The notes under the pieces: model-generated
Told to the model about the DNA's origin: nothing
The model's database searches: none
The model's input: only the letters and a program-made list of their open reading frames with translations
Translations under genes and position numbers: made by a program
Assembly: GCA_964057225.1 (NCBI GenBank)
Contig: OZ059895.1
Span: 18,104,001 to 18,168,000 of the forward strand
DNA: 64,000 bases
Origin: Auanema rhodensis
Lineage: Eukaryota > Animalia > Nematoda
Direction of reading: 5' to 3'
Shown: positions 358 to 34,029 of the stretch, one piece after another
Layout of the letters: every line of letters starts with the position of its first letter
Numbering within the stretch: position 1 is the first letter of the stretch

Positions 358-3239
358 GGCGATTCAAGAAAGTCAACGAAGGCAATATTCAATGAAAAGT
401 CACATGGAATAAAGGACGAAAGGAATATGAGCTATTCAATAGTCTCAACAACCACAGCCACTACCCTTCAACCACCAAAATACTCGTAAATGGATGTTGG
501 GTTAAAGAATCAAATGAAAAGAAAGCATAGCGTATGCTTCTCTCGATCGCGCTCAAGACAATGTAAGCAACTGGATCAGCTGGAATCCATCATCATCGCC
601 CAACCTTGGCCAGGTGTGGGAAAAAAACATGAACACACTAAGTAAGGCCAAATGTAATTCATTATGGGAACAATGGCTTAAAAATTGGTAGCTATGCCAT
701 GCTGCTATTCAGGTTGTATTCAAGTTCGAAGAAGACGTGGGCAAATTGCGATGGTGAGAGTAAGAAGCGTATCAATACGAATGACATATGCAAAGTATTG
801 AAAAATTACTAGTGGTAAGGAAAAAAACAGAAGCAGAGCTTCATTCTGACTATCAGGTTTAGGGGTATGAAATTCAAAAAGTCTGAACAATAGTAAGTGA
901 GACAGAAAAAAATACGAAAAACATTTAGAAACTTGATGAGCATAACCAATCGGTGAACAGAGTAGAATTGTTGAGACGCGTAATGTGTGTCTGACAGCTA
1001 TTTTCGAATACTTCAATACTATGAGTTTGAGAATTGTTGAGTTTAATCAGCAGCATGATGAACAGCTTAGTTACATCTGTTGCAACGTATGCTCAGCATA
1101 GTTGACATGTCGTCATAGTTGACGTTCTCTTTATCGGCGGTATGCAATTGGACGTGACGATGAATACAAAAATCGAGAAAAACAAAACATTTCATCCGTT
1201 TATGGTGCGAAACGCGCAGAAAGAACAGCAAGTGAAAAGAAGAGTATGTGAAATCGACATTCAGTAGCAGATTGTGTCCAAGTGCAATGATTGTTCATCG
1301 ACTGACTGTTGTGGCCTCAGCCTGTTAGATGCGGTGTGATTGTGTAAAGTTCATCTGGAGCTAGCTGATGCTCGGAAGTACGGGGTGGAGAAGAGATAAA
1401 TTTTGCGAGAGTGAAATGATGAGAATAGAAAAGAATGAGAGAAATAGACACAATTGAAGATATGTATATTGGACAATAGACGAGTAATACTACGTTACAA
1501 GACGTTCAAGTTGTATAAGAAAGATGTAAGAAGTCGGAAGCTGTGGTGTGGATAATCTACAGAGCTAGATGATGGAGATGAAGCAGCAGTTGCAACACAA
1601 CAACTCTAAAGGTGCTTAGTATGTGTGTAATATCACAGAAGAAAGAATAATACTCAATATAGATTAAAAAGATTTACATGAATCAACGTGTCGATTGACA
1701 CGTTTGTTAAGCTGTTGAAATAAAGTGTTTAAGTCAGAAATATAGATGCTACATGTACAAAAAAAATAAAAGAGAAAGAGAAAGAGAGAAAAAGAGAAGG
1801 TAAAGGGAATATTTGATGGTAAAGAATGCGACACGGATTTTGATACGGCTATATTCCGAGATTGAGCTGTTCTGTTAATAGAAGTCTGTGATGCTTGAAC
1901 AAGTTCCTGGCTGTTTGTTTCTTGTGCCACTTGTAAATCTTTTACTCAATTGTGCACAAGGCAAGGCAGGAAGCTTTTCCATCTATTTTCAACATCTCAA
2001 TGTCCCAGCCTTTCAATCTTTCGAATATTGCTTATGCCCCTTCGTGGCATTTTTTATTGTCAAAACTCTAGAGATAGATGAGCATTTGAAATTGAGCAGA
2101 ACGTTAGACTAAGCTGTAAGGACGTTGCTGTCAGGTAATCAGGTATAAGATGCGATAAAGTTGTTAAATCTTCATTTTCACTCATTGAATAGAATAATGA
2201 TTGTAATTGATTTATATCCGACCTGAAGCTGTAATCGCACCTGCAGTTGTTTATTCTTTCACAAGAATCAGTCTTCTTATTTCAGAAACTTGTTGACCTC
2301 CCAGTAATCTTTCTTTTTTTGGCTCTCTTTCTCTCTCTCTCACAGACTCTTTTTCTCTCTCTCTCTCTGTATCTGTTTTCTATACCTTATGAAAAGCTTG
2401 AAAAAAATAAAAAAAACTCAAAGAAGCTGATGATTGAGATCTTACAAGTTTTCAAAGCGGAACTGAAACTTGGAGCATACCAAAATATCTTTCAAAAAAT
2501 CAGGAAACATTTGAATACGAGTGGATGATATTGGATATGAAGATTAATATTTATTGTCAACAACAATAATGACTTCGGTTTTATTCAAAAAAACTTATTT
2601 ATTGTTGACTGATCACAAGGGTTGAACAAAAAAAATTTTAATAGAAGCCACTAATGTAGTTGAACATTGAGTTCTTTATAGAAAGCTGGAAAAAAGAAGT
2701 AATCATACTTATTATAGTTATATAAATAAAATATATTTAACAACTAAGTATAATATATTCAATAAATATTTAGAATTGAAAGATATCATTTGATTTTTGA
2801 GAAATGTTATGTGAGACAATATCATGTTGAATGTATTTATCAACAAAAAAATCAATAAATAATAGAAATAATAAACAAAAACAAATTTTTACTATCCAAT
2901 ATTATTTGAAATAAAATGAAAAAAATTTTTTCTGATATTAATTACATTAATTATGTTGATTAATTATTTTAATTTTATTTTAAAGTAATTAAATAAAAAA
3001 GAAATAAAAATTGATAAAATATTCAGAAATACTTGTCCATTTACACATAACAGTTTAGTTTTATTTTTGATCTGATACAATATTTATTATTATAATATAT
3101 TATAATATAAAAAGATAAATTAAATTTTTTTTGTAAAATAATCTGATGCATTTCAAAAGATCTTTGTTATAGACGTCGTCGTGTTGATTAATTTAATTAT
3201 TATCAAAGAAAAAAAATATAATTAAGAATTGGAACTAAC

Positions 3240-4486: not shown

Positions 4487-7400
4487 AAAAAATAACGATT
4501 GAGTAAAGTAAAGATAGAACACATAGTGGATGTGGAACCGTTCTTGACTTTGAAAATTGAAATTTAAAAGCACATCTACGGATTCCTCTTTCTACTTAAT
4601 TCAATATTTTGAGAAAGAAAGTGTTGTCGTTCGTGATTGTGGCTTGCAACTTGCCCACACACATAGAAATTTCAAATAAAACCTTAACAACCGTGTGAAA
4701 ACGAGAAAAGAACTGATATGAAGTGAAATTAATATACTTAAATATTTTATGCTTGTAAGAATGCTCTTTTCTAATAAGAATAGATAAACAATAATGGAAT
4801 AGTTTGGAGGTTTACAGCATAAAATGTGACGAAAAGTGAAATGCTGAGCAGTTTTTCCTTCTGATTTCGGAGGGTGTGTGAGAGAAATTGATAACGATAT
4901 AGGCATTGCACATAATGACAAACGACTACATGCTATCAGTTCTGAAACAAAAAGCTAAAATGTTGTTTTTCTTTGATAATTTCCAAATAATATACTGCAT
5001 AATGGCCTAGTTCATATAGGTAGACACAAAGTAGAAATAGGGAGGAATGAGAAAGGTTTTGCAACAAAGGGCGCTGTATGTGATGATGATGACACGTTAT
5101 ACGTTTATGGCCTTCATTTGCATTCATGTTAATCTAAGAATTTTGAGATTGATCTCAGATTTTACCACACTGGAATGAGGGGCAGAGACTAAGAAAGAGA
5201 AAGACAGATGAAGAGAAATAGAGAGAAAATGAAAGAGTGAACAAGAAAATGTGCATATAGTGAGATAAATAGATTAACTGACTTAACGGGCCTAATTAGG
5301 CGGAAAATAATAAATATTATTATAAGTAATATATTTAAAAATATTGGAAACTTTGAAAAAAAAATTTCACATATATTAGAAAGATATGTAAGATATTAAA
5401 CTGAATAATTGGATAATAATGATGTTGATGATGATGATGCTGCTGATGGTGTTTAGGTTATGCGGAATATTGAGCACTGACTGCAAAAAAAAAGAGAGAA
5501 AGCGAGAAAGAGAGACAGGGAATGAGGGAGAAAATAAATGGTTTGTGTATACGAGATTGAACATTCGGTTCGTCGACGTCCAGCTGGTATGAAGACGACC
5601 AAGCCCTTTTTCTTCAGAAGGAGAATAAACATGACCTCAAAACAGTGTATTTAAGGTAAACTCACTAAATCATCAATGTAATAACGATGTGAAGGTGAAG
5701 TAATTTCCGCCATCAAAAGTAATTTTGAATTAGACGAGTGAAAGAGAGAGAGAAAGAGAGTGACGACGGGGGCAGGATTCAAGAGTATTGAGATTTGATG
5801 GTAATTATGCAATAATTATAAAACAATATGAAATAAACTTATTCAAAAACAAAAAAAAATTCTTTTTTTCTCATTTAATGTTTTAAATAAGTTTATGAAA
5901 GCTTAACCATGTATATAATAATCGGACAAAAATTGTATAAAAAAAACAGAATTTTTAGGAAATGAAATAATATCCAGCCATATAACAAAAGTCAAAAATA
6001 TATACATATATGTTATATCAACTAAATAGGCTTTTGCTATAGCCTCTCAGCGTTTCTATGGCACTCGTTGAGCAGATAATTAGTTGCTGGTGGTGAAGGC
6101 TTGGCTGACCATAGAAAGAAGGCTTGTTTCTTCAACATATCTCAGACCTTCATACTTATGTTCATCCATAAATGAGAAAAGTTACGAATATACTGTGTTA
6201 TTCTGAAGATTCAGTTCTTTCTCTCTCTCTCGCTCTCTCTCTTTCTCTCTTCTTCTATCTTTCTCTTTCTACCTATCACTCCACTATCATCCATATATAT
6301 CTCACTCCTGCTCTCTCTTTCTCAATCTTCTGAAGTAAATATTCTCCTTTTTATGTGTTCTAATTTCAACAGATGTTGCGTCAGTAATCTGATCAGCAAA
6401 TCGGTGTTCAAAGCAAATGATAACTGCCGATTACAACATTTGATTGCATGGGTGCCTGCAAGATGGTAGGCAGGTTCAGATCAGTTGCATTGAGTGCAAC
6501 GTTCAGATGATTCTTGAATACAAGAAAACAATGTTATCTTCATCTTTTAGAAAAAATATAGGAAAGAAAATTTGTTTTTTGATCAAAAATAATGGATGGT
6601 GTACTCAAACCAACAAAAAATATATAAGTATATAATGATTCGATGGTATTATAATCCGCTTAAATCGAATTACAATACTTCTATAACCTAGATATTGACT
6701 GAGAGGATATGAGTATGACAGAGCCACTTTTAGGTATTTAACAAGAAAATACAGAACATAAATAGTATGAATAAGAAATAATTTTATGGAATGCTAAAGA
6801 AGAGTTCCAATCAAATCAGTATATAAAACTTCCAAAACGGCTGATAAAACATTTTTTTAATGATAATTATAGACTAATGATATGGCTATAAACGATACTA
6901 GTTATTCATTCAAAGAAAATGGAATTTGGTTACGTTCATTGAAACATATTGAAGAGGAGAGAAGAACTGATAGAAGAGGATAAATAAAGATGTATAGTAT
7001 GACACAGGTCACAAGAAAAGTACAAAAACTGAAAAATATAAAATTTTAACAAGAAAAAAGTTGAAAACCTTGTGCATGAGGCAAATGATGAGGTTGCTTT
7101 TGGATCAAAATGATTCAGATGGAAATCGGATAATTGGATGACCGGCTAGGCCGAATGAGCAGAACCCAGATGAATGAAATGTCGATGAAAGACGAGAAAA
7201 TAACAGATTTGTTCTGAAGACTTCACATGTGTGTTGAAAAGGACCGGGTAATTCAGGAGATCTGAGAGGAAGAACGATTTGATGAACATACTCTACAGAA
7301 GAGAGAGAGAGAACAACATATGATGAGAGAGTAGGGGGTATTCGTTAGTTATGTGTTAGTTATGTATATGACAGTTGTTGGAAAATCTATATATAGATGG

Positions 7401-27800: not shown

Positions 27801-29104
27801 GTGCATTTTCTTGCTTCTTATCCTCACTCCGATCTCTTCTTCTTATTCTTCACAGTCATTACACATTTTTGCTAGAGCATCCCGAGATCTACAAAGTCTT
27901 GTCGACACAGATTCGTCAATTGCCAGATTTCCTTTAATGGTAACGATCGCAACAACAAGCAGTTTCCACATATTTTCTTTTATAATTATGATCGACTGTT
28001 AATGCTTCATACATCTACTATTTATCTCTGTCAAAGACTTGTATTTAGCAAACATCCATGTTAAAGAATAGGATAACGTCGTTTCTAAATAGCCTTCACT
28101 GTTCTGCATCCGCCAGAACGTTGCGTTTATCTATATCCCACGATTATCTTCTGTCAGTTCATTTAGCTCTTCTTCTGTATGATCTCTTCGGTCGTGCGCT
28201 ATCTGTTCCAAAGTAGTCGCACTGTGTGTGTTGTCTCGTTCTGCGCATCTTCTGACTGAAGCGGAGCGAAGACGACTACCCGATTGCCGACTAACCATCC
28301 AAATATTCTGTTTGTCTGCCTTCATCTTCAATGCAACAGTCAGTAATCCGTTTGCACTGGCTTTTCTACCGAATCACATTTTTTCTCATGCGCTTCTCTT
28401 GTCGCTACTAGCACGACTCTTCCACACGTAAATTGTTCTTCCTCAAAATCTTATTGATTGATTACTTGTAAGTAGTGGTAATGGTTCTATGCCCTGCTGT
28501 GTCTTGTTTTCGCCGACTCTGAAATGTCTTGAAATTTGTCCACCTTTGTTTTCTCCTAATATCAGTTTTCTGTTGTTTCCATCTAAGTCACATCATTGGC
28601 ATCTATTCAATTAGAAAATGACCGATCTGGTTGTAATGATTGACCTTTCTTCTATCATTAGCTATCTCGCATTTTTCCAATCTTGACGCTACCAATATTT
28701 AACGAAGTGTCATTTTATTGCAAACTTCATAAGCTTTTTATCTACCGGCAAAGCTATGAGATAATCAGTTTTCTTCTTAGCTAGACAAAGAATTCATTAA
28801 GGCAATTATCCCTTTCTAGTTCTCATCCCAGCCAGATTAACTAATAGCTTGTAGAAGATAAGTTTAACCTCTTTCCTGGCTACTTCGATTAGCTCGCATC
28901 ATTCACTATTAAATGTCGTTCTTGTTGTCAAAGTTGTTTTTATTTCAATTCATAACTTGTGTGTGCTTGTGCTAACCGGGCGTTTTCAGAAGACAGTGAG
29001 CGGAAGCTGTCGTGCGTCGCTGACACCGCCCACTACTAACGAGGGACTCGTCATGACGGCATCTGGCACTGATCACGTAGCTGCTGCAATTCACAACACT
29101 AACG
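21819..29104 (+). CDS. asd-2: Distal N-terminal exons A, B and C of a long asd-2 isoform
   Basis: A 21819-21868 (MLNLQLGLGYLLGNLP, phase 2, GTACGT), B 25556-25649 (TTTCAG, RPKIQRSFTLP..WDHDEV, GTAAGT, phase 0) and C 28990-29104 (TTTTCAG, KTVSGS..IHNTN, GTACCG, phase 1). Phases chain 2-0-1 into the common exon at 30403 with no stop. Confidence 0.65.
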
Positions 29105-30111
29105 GTACCGATACCTACTACTACTATTTTTTTCTTTTTTTTTGCTTCTTATACTCACGATTGAACTCACAAAAATTCAAAACCTGATAGATACTAATAA
29201 GAAAAAGTACGGGAAGAAATTGAAACTATGAAGATGATTATGGTCAAATGAAATAGTTGAAGTTCGGGAGTGCGAAAGGAAGCTGTATTCTTTCTCTTGT
29301 ATGATGTAGATAATTGTAGGGGTAGTAATTTTCCTTATGGAAGATAAATCACCTCTCTTGTTTTCTCCTTAGTGAACTGGTCACCTTGTTTTAACTGATT
29401 GTCGTCTTCGTCCTTGGTTGCCTGTTGTCTCAAATCTAGCCGCTCAGAATTGATACTGTCGCTGCGATTATATCAAGGTTCGCATAAAATGAAAGTATTC
29501 ATCATGTAAAGATTAGCGGGATATTTCCATGTTATCATTAAAACTTGAGAATTTTACGCTAAACGAGACGGGGGGACAACTGATATCAGTTATTAACATG
29601 AAAAGGTCAAGTGTAAAAGTAACAAAAACCGGGAAGGGAAAGTGCATCATTTTTCAATTACGAAGCTTCTGTTCAAAATGGCCTGAGAGAAAATTCATCG
29701 AAGATATGAATGCAATGAGATGAAGTAAAAAGATTTTCTTCTAAAACAACGAACAACTGCTCAGACACCTTTGAATAGCAATATCTTCTTTCTATCTATG
29801 TGTATGTGTGTGCGGCAGTATGTTCAGTCATTCTGGCAACAGCGGCATCAACAGGAGACATAGCAGAAGAAGGGGAGAAATTACATAGAGATGAAGGATG
29901 AGAGAGAAAAAGAAAGAAATGAAGTAGACTGTTGTCTTCCGAGCACGTTGTAATGCAGGGCAGAGCATCTCTATAGACCCATAGGTTCTTCTGTTCTGCC
30001 TGTCGGATAGGTCAATTTGGTGGAAGGGTGCATCAACGCATCACTTCAGTCGATATTTTTTCTGACGGAGTTTGCCTGCTTTTACCTCCGACTCGACAGT
30101 TCAAGAGTCTA

Positions 30112-31791
30112 ATGGCGGAAGATAGCTCCTCTGCTCCAACTACGCTCGCAAGCAATCCTCAAGCCTTCTGTGCTGGTACCTCCTCGTCATGCAGCACTCC
30201 TGTCGTTTCTTCTGTTATATCAGAAAGTATTATTCGGCCTGGTATGCGTCAGTTTATTTGGTTTTTCTTCAAATGTTTTAGTGAAAGTCAAAAAATTCTT
30301 CCGGGTTTTATATTCTTTTTACAATTTAGGGATATGTTCTAGCTTCTTTATTATTTTAAATTTGAATTTCTGTCAATGCGTTTACTAAGAAAGACATTTC
30401 AGTTCTAGTTGCCAATGCAGCCAATCCACAGCAGTATACAGTTGAATACTTATCACAATTGCTCAAGGATAAAAAGCAACTGGCTGCTTTCCCCAATGTT
30501 TTCCATCACTTGGAAAGACTAGCAGATGAAGGTATGATACTTAATCACCCGAAAATAATTTATTTCTGACTTTGTTTCAGAAATTAGCAAAGTTAGAGTA
30601 GCTCTATTCCAATTCGAATTCACAAAAGAGCAAATGATGCTGCCTGATCCTGATGGCGATGTTCAAGTAATCACTGAAAAAGTTTTTGTCCCAGCTAAAG
30701 AGCACCCAGATGTGAGTACTCCTTCATATTAATGCTATAATTTTCCAATATTCTAGTATAATTTTGTTGGAAGGATATTAGGGCCACGTGGTATGACAGC
30801 AAAGCAGTTGGAACAGGAGACGGGTTGTAAAATTATGGTCCGTGGTCGTGGATCGATGAGAGATAAAAAAAAGGTATTGATGAAGCATTTCCCTATAAAT
30901 CTTTATTTTTTTTTTGCAGGAGGAATTGAATCGTGGAAAACCTAACTGGGAACATCTTTCTGAGGAATTGCATGTCCTTATCCAATGCGAAGATACACCA
31001 AATAGAGCTCGTGTAAAGCTGGCTCGTGCAGTTGATGAAGTCAAGAAGTTACTTGTTCCAGCTGTTGGTTTTACTGACAATTTCTATTTCATATTTTTAT
31101 ATTTTCAGCCTGAGGGTGAAGATGAATTAAAAAGAAAACAATTAATGGAATTAGCTATTATTAATGGCACCTACAGGTCGGCTAATGAACAGGCTGCTGC
31201 GGCTGCAGCTCAGTTGGCCGCTAAACAACCAAATACATTGGCTGCCGCTTTACGTAAGCAATTTATTTAACGATATATCGTCAATTCATAATTTTGTAGA
31301 AGCTGCTGCTTTAGCCCAAGCTAGGGGTGTTACAATGCTGAGTGGATCTCCATCTTTAGCTCGTTCCCCTACTCTGTCGGTTGCCGGAGCTCCCATTGTC
31401 ATGAGCCCCGGAAGGGGTCAACCCTCAAATACAAATGCAACTCAACAGATGATTCAACTTCAATCTCAATTAGGAGCTGCTGCAGTTGCTCAAAGCAGTG
31501 CCGCAGTAGCAGCGCAACAGGCTGCTCTTCTTCAGCAACAACAAGCAGCTGAATATCAGCAACTATTGTTGAGGTCTGCTTTTCCCAAAATCAAAAGTTG
31601 AATGAAAGTTTTCAAATTTCAGTCAGGGAATTTCTTTTGATGCATTAACTGGAACGGCTGTTCAGTACCAGCCCCAAACAGCTGCATATAATGCTGCATT
31701 ATTAAACCAACAGTATGCAGAATATGCTGGAGTGGATTTAACTTCTGCTCAAGCTACTTCTGGTGGGTATCGCCTAAGAAAATGGGCTTGA
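30112..31791 (+). CDS. asd-2: STAR/Quaking-family RNA-binding protein ASD-2 (QUA1-KH-QUA2), proximal-start isoform ending GGYRLRKWA
   Basis: Exons 30112-30241, 30403-30531, 30581-30711, 30757-30873, 30920-31063, 31109-31253, 31300-31573 and 31623-31791. QUA1 [31 protein letters not shown]; [35 protein letters not shown]; QUA2 [23 protein letters not shown]. The Ala/Gln tail with YAGVDLTS matches ASD-2 rather than GLD-1. Confidence 0.93.
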
Positions 31792-32338
31792 TTATTTTAA
31801 ATATTTTTAAATTTGTTTCTATAGGAGAAGAGAAAGCGAGAGAAGTAGTCTCTCTCTTTCCCACTTAATTTATTTTTAATTTATCCACATTTTAATTTAT
31901 TGCGAATTCTCTTTATTGAATGATCTACATTCCTAATTTTTTACGGTGGTTCACTTTATTCGTTCAAACATTCCTTAAACTTTCACATAGATCTCATACC
32001 TTTGTATGTCTTTTCGTGACTGATTCTGGAACGTATTACCATTTTTTCAGCACTTCCAGAATCGTCTTAACATTTTAATTCAAATTTTTAAATTTATTTA
32101 TTCATTTTACAACAAAAAACGCAGTTAATTCATCACTTACTGAACCGCATGATAATGGCAATCCGCTATATTGCTTTTTATTAACTAGCACTTTCGATTA
32201 TTTTCGCGTTTTTTTTCTCGAAAAATAGTTGCCAAAAATCTAATATTGGTATTAATATTTTGATATTTATAACGAATCCTTATTATATTTTGGGGAATCG
32301 TAACAACATTACATGTTCCTAACATAGCTAACGTTCAG

Positions 32339-32400
32339 GTGCCATGATTAACCAACGTCGTGTATTGGGAACGTCGAGAGACCATCCTTACAAGCCATAG
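32339..32400 (+). CDS. asd-2: Alternative last coding exon of asd-2 (GAMINQRRVLGTSRDHPYKP*)
   Basis: Internal donor G|GTGGGT at 31762/31763 and acceptor GTTCAG ending 32338 are phase matched. The encoded RR..RDHPY resembles the QKI-5 and HOW(L) nuclear tails. Confidence 0.8.
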
Positions 32401-33320
32401 GGTGTTCACCGTCCTTGCTGCTCAGCTGGATGGATTGATGCCCTTCCGCTCGCAACACTCCAATCAATCTAGTTCGACCTCGGTTCGTTTTATTACATCA
32501 GCTGTGATTATGATTATCGCCTGAGTCGTCATTCTGAAAACTGGAAAGTTTTCTGGAATAATTACAATTACGCAAATGAAAGCCAAAAGAATTTCATTCC
32601 TTTCATAGTTGTTTCTCAGTGCATACTGGCGATAATCATTATATCATCATCAGATTAGTACTTGTCCTGTGTTTTTACTTCATTTGCTACTCAGTACTGA
32701 CTTACCAAGGGGCCTTCTTACAAGGTGCCTTCGTCAAGTGTCCTCAGATTATCAATTGTGCCTTACGTTGCTACAGTGTCTTTTACTTATATATTCTTCT
32801 TTTTTTCTGATGACATGTTGCTAAGCATGTTGTCCACCTTTTATAACTTTTTCTCTAATAATGCAGGTGTTTTGTGAACATCATCATCATCATTTCTGGT
32901 GCATAGAAATAAGAGATTTTTATCTATCATAATTATATGTCATAATATCTATAATATAATATATGCTCACCTTGTTGCATGAAATCACACCAAATTTTTT
33001 TTCTTTATATAGTCGTCGTTTTTTTGTTTTTTTTTCAATAATTGAATTTAACTAAAGATTAGTTTTTTATTTTACTATTGCCATATTGTCACTTCTTTGA
33101 TCGATGCTGTAAGTATGTTATTACCATATAAAGAGATTTGTATTTCCCGATCTTTGTGCTATAATACGAGTTAAAATTACGTAGAAATGCTTATTCACAG
33201 ATTTCATAACAAAATAACGAATTATAATAGGAAATGTTCGTTTTTGTCACAGTATTGTAAGGATGCTCATTGTTGAACATCTCATATAATTTCCAAACAC
33301 TGAATCGTTATGTTTGGTTC

Positions 33321-33326
33321 AATAAA
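33321..33326 (+). terminator. Probable distal poly(A) signal of asd-2
   Basis: First AATAAA I found after the 32400 stop, at the end of a U-rich 3' UTR-like stretch. Confidence 0.55.
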
Positions 33327-34029
33327 GTTAACAGCATGCTTTTCCGTTTAAAATACAATAACTAACACTACTATATAATAATTAAAAATTTATCTAAACC
33401 TCTAATCATTTGTAAAAAAAAACAAAAACGGTAAGAACCATCATATATCCGTAGTCTTTTTTCTAAAAAACTGAGTTCATGTGAACTACTTATAACACAA
33501 GAACCAGTAAAACAGTAATATGGAGATTTGACAGATAAAATCGGTCAATAATCATAAGGGGGAAATGTAAGCGAAAAGCAGGCACTATGCTCTAGCCGAG
33601 TTAATTACCGTTAAGCGTTAGTTATGTACTGAAGTAAGCTGTGCTTAAATACAAGGCAAAAGTACAAGTTAATACGAAGTTAAAAGCTTATATACATTTG
33701 GCAACCGGGTATGGACTTCGTGTGAACGGATTGGGAGATAAGAAAGCTAGCGAAAAGAAATCTTTTAAAAGATATTAGAAGAAAAGCAAATTAGAAATTA
33801 ATTATATGTATAAATATCCAGTAATTAGAACCGCAAAATGCGAGAGGGATAAGTGACACGTGAAAACAAGAAAACTAGATTGGCAAATATCTATCACAGT
33901 ACATTGGTTAAAATGTTTTTTTTTTTGAGATAAATTGAGAAAATATAGAAGTGCGATCATGAGATTGGTATTGAAAGATGCAACAATAAACAAGGAAAAT
34001 TAAAAATAGAAGCAAGTGGTCATAAAAAA

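Follow-up and report, generated by a model that had tools for sequence, protein, structure and literature searches.

What decides which of two tails ends the protein encoded by a STAR-family gene on the + strand of a 64-kb stretch of Auanema rhodensis DNA (the whole of which we call the window; the gene lies at ~28990 to 33200), and what part is played by two CTAAC copies that stand just ahead of its last exon? Quaking and HOW are regulators of muscle, glial, and germline RNA programs, and ASD-2 is their nematode counterpart. We found that the last intron of this asd-2 ortholog is spliced out in the major RNA form and retained in a minor one, that each outcome encodes a conserved C terminus, and that the 3' splice site lies within a strongly conserved block. 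We propose that the intron is a retention switch controlled by a regulator of the KH-QUA2 type. To this statement as a whole we assign a probability of roughly 0.55; the two-tail switch at the last asd-2 intron, taken by itself, is very probable.

The gene was identified from its domain order and from searches made exon by exon or through database proteins. Exons A and B match PF16544 (STAR_dimer; 67 bits), exons C and D match PF22675 (KH-I_KHDC4-BBP) and PF00013, and exon E is a QUA2-type region, so that the order is QUA1 dimerization, KH, QUA2. The closest protein, found by exon-by-exon searches and by searches seeded with database proteins, comes from Auanema sp. JU1783 (P0287; 95.8% identity over the exons). 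At the JU1783 locus, the exon ends align with those of the window, and the intron interior has diverged. When a search was seeded with a Caenorhabditis tropicalis protein (P0122), P0287 clustered with proteins named "RNA-binding protein asd-2" from Caenorhabditis elegans, T. colubriformis, and others; the proteins of this group all have the C-terminal exon G and both tails. Judged by these sequence comparisons, the gene is an ortholog of asd-2, QKI, and HOW, and is asd-2 rather than gld-1 or another STAR gene.

The features on which the argument turns are listed here in window coordinates, with distances in nucleotides (nt) from the exon where these are negative.

31623 to 31762, + strand: exon G, the last common coding exon (RNA junctions 31573^31623 and 31762^32339, reading frames, and tblastn to orthologs).
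31762 to 31791, + strand: read-through extension GGYRLRKWA with its TGA stop (31789 to 31791), that is, the short tail (sequence and conservation).
31763 to 31768, + strand: donor GTGGGT, nonconsensus, whose bases are also codons of the short tail (G/GT GGG) (sequence and RNA junction).
31763 to 32338, + strand: the alternatively retained last intron, 576 nt (unspliced 632-nt unitig in four RNA runs).
32313 to 32364, + strand: conserved block over the 3' splice site, ATGTTnCTAACnnnGCTAACGTTYAG/GTGCCATGATTAACCAACGTCGTGT (four-species alignment).
32319 to 32323, + strand: distal CTAAC (CUAAC in RNA) at -20, with a branch-type A at 32322, which is -17 from the exon (motif scan).
32328 to 32332, + strand: proximal CTAAC (GCUAAC) at -11 from the exon (motif scan).
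32333 to 32338, + strand: acceptor GTTCAG in the window and GTTTAG in Auanema JU1783, both lacking the run of U found in the nematode consensus UUUUCAG (sequence and RNA).
32339 to 32400, + strand: coding part of the tail exon, (G)AMINQRRVLGTSRDHPYKP, with HPY codons at 32383 to 32391 and the stop TAG at 32398 to 32400 (frames and RNA).
32347 to 32352, + strand: exonic ATTAAC (AUUAAC), which contains the UAAC STAR half-site (synonymous positions unchanged across four species).
32401 to 33230, + strand: 3' untranslated region (UTR) common to both forms (RNA contigs end at 33139 to 33230; TATAAA at 33127, AATAAA at 33321).

Exon G ends in ACT TCT G at 31762, its final G being the first base of a glycine codon. 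Splicing continues the frame as G/GT GCC ATG and leads to GAMINQRRVLGTSRDHPYKP and a stop, and reading on into the intron gives GGT GGG TAT CGC CTA AGA AAA TGG GCT TGA. The acceptor context is aacgttcAG, with the AG at 32337 to 32338, and the sequence just before 32339 reads CTAACatagCTAACgttcAG. A first-pass annotation, made from the sequence alone, had placed the donor between 31762 and 31763 and the acceptor between 32338 and 32339 and had named the CTAAC positions and both frames; all of these were correct on rereading.

Evidence for two mRNA forms came from assembled contigs and unitigs of four public runs (X1 to X4) of one study, whose sample types are coded. The presence of spliced contigs identifies the material as RNA, and such contigs give presence and rough proportion only, free of strand, molecule-end, or tissue information. 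The junction 31762^32339 (GT..AG, 576 nt skipped), which the first-pass annotation had predicted and named as a check, was found in all four runs as the major form (unitig depths of 145, 75, 153, and 80), and all seven downstream junctions of the gene model were found in RNA contigs. Each run also included a 632-nt unitig (31736 to 32367) that begins in exon G, contains the whole intron unspliced, and ends in the tail exon; its depths were 18, 22.5, 22.3, and 29.8. Retention of the tail intron thus amounted to 11, 23, 13, and 27% of transcripts in X1 to X4, respectively, and spliced and fully unspliced forms were both present in RNA above the level of other introns.

Such a signal might be unprocessed pre-mRNA or noise, the tail exon being a constitutive last exon and the read-through tail meaningless. 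The nature of the RNA data, as just described, leaves some room for this view, as does the fact that late splicing is common for last, longer introns. The other introns of the gene argue against it. Six asd-2 introns of 45 to 49 nt showed zero retained depth by bin arithmetic in the four runs, and the 1.3-kb upstream intron stood at ~4 to 6% of exon depth in run X2, versus 11 to 27% for the tail intron. The retained form is therefore neither DNA contamination nor general pre-mRNA. Internal polyadenylation was likewise rejected as the source of the short form: no polyadenylation [poly(A)] signal was found in the 576-nt intron when nine AAUAAA-type variants were scanned, and the unspliced contig reaches the tail exon. 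Because the intron has no such signal and the downstream 3' UTR is shared, the short form arises from intron retention and not from an alternative 3' end. No Rfam family was found in the retained intron.

Is the retained form read as protein? A short tail of the pattern GG[YF]x[LV]R[KR]WA followed by a stop is kept in six clade V genomes, namely, those of two Auanema species, Dictyocaulus, Ancylostoma, C. elegans, and Pristionchus. The tails themselves are GGYRLRKWA (window and JU1783), GGFLVRKWA (Dictyocaulus viviparus and Ancylostoma duodenale), GGYYVRRWA (C. elegans), and GGGYSVRRWA (Pristionchus mayeri). The donor GTGGGT is identical in Auanema JU1783, Dictyocaulus, A. duodenale, and C. 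elegans, and P. mayeri reads the same GGT GGG codons. Within the tail, codons turn over synonymously (Ala as GCT, GCG, GCA, or GCC; Arg as AGA, CGA, or CGG), and conservation drops immediately after the stop codon. A peptide conserved through synonymous turnover, with conservation ending at the stop, indicates that the short tail is translated, and the retained reading frame is, by these codons, under protein-level selection. Moreover, short-tail proteins have been annotated from transcript evidence in five species (C. elegans, C. briggsae, C. nigoni, A. ceylanicum, and P. pacificus). Together with the persistence of the peptide and its stop from Pristionchus to the strongylids, these annotations leave the explanation by noise or pre-mRNA largely refuted, and we give it almost no weight. 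A hairpin after the short-tail stop (31817 to 31879) was considered and rejected, as it gave sub-threshold hits to microRNA families and z = -1.0 and was not kept even in JU1783.

A second type of short tail occurs in other nematode clades, with AGQLLVRQ in Ascaris, GGQLLIRH in Panagrellus, and AGQLIRHHC in Plectus, and insect HOW-like proteins end in GGLFAR. A recognizable short tail has been lost in a Diploscapter-like genome (GMSITCI and a stop) and in A. viteae (GQ and a stop). The recurrence of both tails across Nematoda and of short GG.. tails in insects supports, at the level of protein comparison, an ancestral choice between long and short forms, and the suggestion of the first-pass annotation that an ancestral switch has been kept here holds up.

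The spliced form carries a tail of 20 residues with a basic stretch and R-D-H-P-Y, a putative PY-type nuclear import motif. Against the Pfam model PF16551 (Quaking_NLS, 30 positions), neither the tail alone nor full-length nematode long forms gave a match; the scores are 73 bits for vertebrate QKI-5 and 16 bits for a tick protein, the latter under the cutoff of 22.9. An alignment of C termini was used in its place, covering the window, Auanema JU1783, Ancylostoma, C. elegans, Pristionchus, a filaria, Plectus, the nematomorph Gordionus, a tick, other invertebrates, and vertebrate QKI-5. G-A and R-x-H-P-Y were invariant in this alignment, and R(R) was nearly so. The core R-x-H-P-Y and the basic RR before it are encoded by a last exon of their own, which the RNA-confirmed junction links to the common body. 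The STAR-NLS motif is written RxHPYQ/GR; here, the residues after HPY are KP or KQ, not QR. The Dictyocaulus tail is identical to that of the window at 18 of 18 residues. These invariants identify the tail exon as the counterpart of the nuclear localization signal (NLS) tail of QKI-5, and the likeness to QKI-5 and HOW(L) first noticed in the window is borne out from nematodes to vertebrates. On the strength of the alignment, we take it to be a true counterpart of the QKI-5/HOW(L) tail.

Public gene models of relatives already contain the isoform switch, which is of the known QKI/HOW kind and is not new. In C. elegans RefSeq, two short-tail proteins (NP_001021626.1, isoform b, 403 amino acids [aa]; NP_001021627.1, 445 aa) both end in SAHGGYYVRRWA, and a long-tail protein (NP_001250340.1, 486 aa) ends in GAMLNNRRLLGASREHPYKQ. 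The models of C. briggsae, C. nigoni, and A. ceylanicum have both tails, combined with alternative N termini. Literature searches on asd-2 C-terminal isoforms and autoregulation returned no paper on the function of the two tails. A 2026 paper on HOW names GLD-1, a single cytoplasmic isoform, as the C. elegans ortholog of HOW and QKI, so that the fly literature treats GLD-1 as the worm equivalent (PMC12868882). The sequences compared here show that it is ASD-2, not GLD-1, that retains the full ancestral two-tail design, with both tails under protein-level selection.

How, then, is the choice between the tails made? Tail-exon acceptors were collected from eight genomes. C. elegans was represented by a Logan contig (L002) in which both tails are an exact match to C. 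elegans proteins; the Meloidogyne enterolobii locus (L008), a short STAR gene without exon G or tail, was left out. CTAAC copies ahead of the acceptors were placed as follows.

Auanema rhodensis (window): CTAAC at -20 and -11; spacer atag; base before the distal copy c; acceptor GTTCAG.
Auanema sp. JU1783: CTAAC at -20 and -11; spacer atag; base before the distal copy c; acceptor GTTTAG.
Dictyocaulus viviparus: CTAAC at -20 and -11; spacer cgag; base before the distal copy t; acceptor GTTCAG.
Ancylostoma duodenale: CTAAC at -20 and -11; spacer catg; base before the distal copy g; acceptor GTTCAG.
C. elegans: CTAAC at -77 only, plus CTAAT at -38.
Diploscapter-like genome: CTAAC at -29, plus CTAAA at -15.
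P. mayeri: CTAAC at -24, a single copy.
A. viteae: CTAAC at -97 and -69, none adjoining the acceptor.

Across the two Auanema genomes, Dictyocaulus, and Ancylostoma, variation within the pair is confined to the 4-nt spacer and the base that precedes the distal copy, and the acceptor is GTTYAG throughout. In a four-way alignment of these genomes, the block at 32313 to 32364 has 13, 19, and 17 invariant columns per 20, versus 0 to 6 in the intron body and 10 to 12 in coding exon G, and the rest of the intron is unalignable outside the block. Conservation reaches 26 nt into the tail exon at synonymous sites: over its codons 1 to 8, all six synonymous sites are invariant in the four species, ATTAAC included, and the following seven codons vary freely. 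The invariance of the pair and its surroundings indicates strong RNA-level selection in the lineage of Auanema and Strongylida. The tandem pair is absent from the tail-exon acceptor in C. elegans and A. viteae, though the tail exon persists in both, and it is a lineage-specific addition to an older switch. The new part of the system is the tandem CTAAC at -20/-11, the same in free-living Auanema and in parasitic strongylids. Metagenome scans gave no match to the exact 3'-splice-site block and no relatives of the C-terminal 71 residues. A conserved RNA structure over the acceptor was considered and rejected (RNAalifold, -6.8 kcal/mol, with no compensatory pairs; single-sequence z = -1.6, with the paired bases not kept in the strongylids).

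Chance occurrence was assessed within the window, where CTAAC is not enriched (92 found versus 97 expected). A copy lies 5 to 35 nt upstream of TTYAG at 9 of 342 sites, counting both strands, versus 1.85% expected, and the tail-exon acceptor is the only one of the 342 with two copies. None of the seven constitutive asd-2 acceptors has CTAAC. There are seven CTAAC pairs in the window, versus a mean of 2.9 and a maximum of 10 in 300 block shuffles. The six besides the one at the tail exon, each on one strand with copies at most 20 nt apart, lie at 3235/3249 and 14519/14527 on the + strand and at 7344/7355, 7479/7491, 16887/16902, and 39962/39977 on the - strand; these could be STAR-protein target sites in neighboring genes, or chance.

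Elsewhere in asd-2, a second place is regulated. An upstream coding exon at 28990 to 29103 (ATG at 29054) is joined by junction 29103^30403 in four of four runs, and a second upstream coding exon (ATG at 30112) ends at 30241 and is joined by junction 30241^30403 in X1, X3, and X4, not in X2. A 1.17-kb contig (29075 to 30240) continues unspliced past the donor at 29103. These two alternative upstream exons resemble the asd-2a/asd-2b alternative first exons of C. elegans. CTAAC occurs at 28972, which is -18 of the acceptor of the regulated exon 28990 to 29103, and inside that exon at 29036 and 29099, the latter right at the donor. Both regulated places of asd-2 therefore have CTAAC, and the seven constitutive introns have none.

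Could the tandem CUAAC be only a strong, duplicated SF1/U2 branch signal that offsets a poor acceptor (GUUCAG or GUUUAG), retention being passive, set by splice-site strength, and without ASD-2 input? The first-pass annotation had cautioned that CTAAC also resembles a branch-point sequence, and the caution is well founded: the A of the distal copy falls at the usual nematode branch position, and a putative branch A at -19 has been called typical (PMC3469465). In addition, none of the acceptors that have the pair matches the UUUUCAG consensus, the single copies of P. mayeri and of the Diploscapter-like genome resemble normal branch sites, and SF1 and QKI-type proteins recognize near-identical sequence (PMC3983035). 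However, nematode introns are generally without a branch consensus (PMC3469465), and CTAAC is neither enriched before acceptors in the window nor present at the constitutive asd-2 introns. The copy at -11 is too close for branch use, yet it is equally invariant, and conservation continues into the exon through AUUAAC at synonymous sites. The copies at -18 of the upstream regulated exon and inside it also count against this reading. Weighing these points, we consider a purely branch-site role, the main rival to our proposal, rather unlikely. Were it correct, the locus would still be a clean case of a nematode intron needing a consensus branch sequence, a modest finding.

In our reading, the last asd-2 intron is a protein-isoform switch that works by retention. 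Splicing gives the QKI-5-type tail, and retention carries translation 9 codons into the intron to end in GGYRLRKWA, both mRNAs using the same downstream poly(A) region. Splicing would, we propose, be inefficient by design, through the donor GTGGGT and the acceptor GUUCAG without a U-run. Control would be exerted through the conserved block of 50 nt, in which CUAAC at -20 and -11 and the exonic AUUAAC are candidate KH-QUA2 sites. Most likely, the distal CUAAC (A at -17) serves as the branch site for SF1/U2, a role in which it may be needed because the acceptor is without a U-run. The tandem layout and the exonic AUUAAC would let a STAR dimer, most simply ASD-2, occupy the site, hold back splicing, and raise the short form. 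ASD-2 would then compete with SF1 and tune its own long/short ratio, much as QKI-5 acts at NUMB exon 12 and on its own transcripts, and as ASD-2 acts with SUP-12 at unc-60 intron 1A.

The sequence of the pair is compatible with this mechanism. An ASD-2 element, as in unc-60 and let-2, has at least two close CUAAC copies, and here two copies stand 4 nt apart in four genomes, a tandem layout of the kind to which dimeric ASD-2 binds. A strict QKI element would pair the core ACUAAY with a UAAY half-site no more than 20 nt further on; the hexamer cores here are CCUAAC/GCUAAC in Auanema, UCUAAC/GCUAAC in Dictyocaulus, and GCUAAC/GCUAAC in Ancylostoma, never ACUAAC, with UAAC half-sites present, and the proximal copy matches the HOW motif (A/G/U)CUAAC (PMC12868882). 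We somewhat favor a regulatory role for the block through some KH-QUA2 protein, and consider direct control of the block by ASD-2 itself possible but less likely than not.

Several observations weigh against the proposal. With no A before either pentamer, neither the QKI core in its strict form (ACUAAY) nor the optimum for SF1 (UACUAAC) is matched perfectly, and inspection of the sequence adjoining the pair revealed no UGUGUG (SUP-12) or GCAUG (FOX-1/ASD-1) site. The position of the distal copy is exactly that expected of a branch site, and a purely constitutive splicing role could explain much of the conservation. The pair is also dispensable for the switch, as C. elegans keeps both tails with its single CTAAC at -77. 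Retention was higher where asd-2 depth was lower, the opposite of simple self-repression, although this comparison consists of four unnormalized values only. Finally, the premise of the first-pass annotation that the short isoform is the non-nuclear one is weakened by C. elegans. Isoform b (403 aa), which ends in GGYYVRRWA, is identical to ABU96119.1, and the latter is probably the cDNA used as "ASD-2b." The ASD-2b cDNA rescues a nuclear splicing phenotype in muscle, and an anti-ASD-2b antibody stains muscle nuclei (PMC3469465). A short-tailed ASD-2b active in nuclei would mean that C. elegans ASD-2 can work in the nucleus without the HPY tail, and a strict scheme of long as nuclear and short as cytoplasmic, like that of QKI-5/6 or HOW(L)/(S), should not be assumed.

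Some other KH-QUA2 or RNA-binding protein might set the ratio by tissue or sex, be it a GLD-1-like STAR paralog or a factor that reads ATGTT, AACGTT, or the exonic part of the block. The conserved block is larger than two pentamers, and several STAR paralogs exist in nematodes, such as the proteins named gld-1. Retention differed ~2-fold between two sample pairs, with 11 and 13% in X1 and X3 versus 23 and 27% in X2 and X4, and X2 is also the run without the 30241^30403 junction. Against such a factor, CUAAC repeats are the experimentally defined ASD-2 element, and no other known motif (GCAUG or UGUGUG) is present. We judge control by a protein other than ASD-2 to be improbable, and keep ASD-2 as the simplest candidate for the KH-QUA2 regulator in the proposed switch.

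Three further observations concern the gene, its paralogs, and its surroundings. Exons D and E are separated by a 45-nt intron (31064 to 31108) whose length is divisible by three and which contains no stop in frame, so that a genomic open reading frame (30920 to 31252) reads through it; no retained RNA form of this intron was seen in the four runs. The M. enterolobii locus L008 (CAVMJV010000093.1, 6925 to 8189 and 10461 to 10841) encodes a STAR gene of 255 aa without exon G or the HPY tail, beside a partial duplicate of KH exons, and is distinct from those Meloidogyne asd-2-like proteins that have the ending RDAAFPYGK. Downstream in the window, a neighboring transcribed gene begins ~200 nt past the 3' end of asd-2, where a separate contig of ~4.3 kb (depth 34 to 44) covers 33399 to 33800 and beyond.

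The conserved block is a precisely defined element, open to mutation, in which to study how the isoforms of a STAR protein might be balanced by the protein itself, and Auanema is genetically tractable. The block is unchanged in a hookworm and a lungworm, where asd-2 isoform control could matter for development.

Comparison with known systems places the locus among several related arrangements. C. elegans asd-2 (T21G5.5) is the direct ortholog, with the same donor GTGGGT and both tails annotated; unlike the window gene, its nearest CTAAC is at -77, and its acceptor reads GUCUUCAG in place of the CTAAC/GTTCAG block. At unc-60, ASD-2b directly binds CUAAC repeats near the 3' splice site and, with SUP-12, represses excision of intron 1A and causes its retention, probably by hindering branch-site use (PMC3469465). 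That element differs from ours in needing an adjoining UGUGUG bound by SUP-12, which is absent here, and its target is not asd-2 itself. At NUMB exon 12, QKI-5 represses the exon by displacing SF1 at the branch-site AUUAAC and also acts through an exonic site (PMC3983035). The window has a similar layout, with two CUAAC copies before the acceptor and an invariant exonic AUUAAC, but NUMB exon 12 is a mammalian cassette exon, whereas here the element belongs to a terminal intron whose retention changes the protein tail and to which binding is putative.

In Drosophila, HOW(L) is a long nuclear isoform with a C-terminal localization signal, and a conserved short isoform is without it (PMC12868882). 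Insect short tails (..GGLFAR) start with GG at the same junction as nematode short tails; HOW(S) is reported to be cytoplasmic, in contrast to the short-tailed C. elegans ASD-2b, which acts in nuclear splicing. Vertebrate Quaking (QKI-5 versus QKI-6/7) belongs to the same family; its alternative C-terminal tails likewise follow a shared body whose last residue is G, and the long tail of the window gene aligns residue by residue with the QKI-5 NLS tail. The short form there comes from alternative 3' exons with separate UTRs, whereas here it comes from one retained intron and 9 read-through codons. QKI response elements abound in the QKI pre-mRNA, and QKI-5 regulates the alternative 3'-end splicing of this transcript (PMC5548867; PMC5695090); those elements are many and dispersed, in contrast to the one compact candidate pair of CUAAC copies on the acceptor here. 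As a more tentative extension of our proposal, the Auanema/strongylid lineage may have gained a compact ASD-2 self-binding site on the acceptor of its own HPY exon, at which nuclear ASD-2 would displace SF1 and shift output from the long to the short form. If true, this single intron would act as a homeostat for the nuclear dose of a master splicing regulator, independent of but convergent with the self-splicing loop of vertebrate QKI-5.

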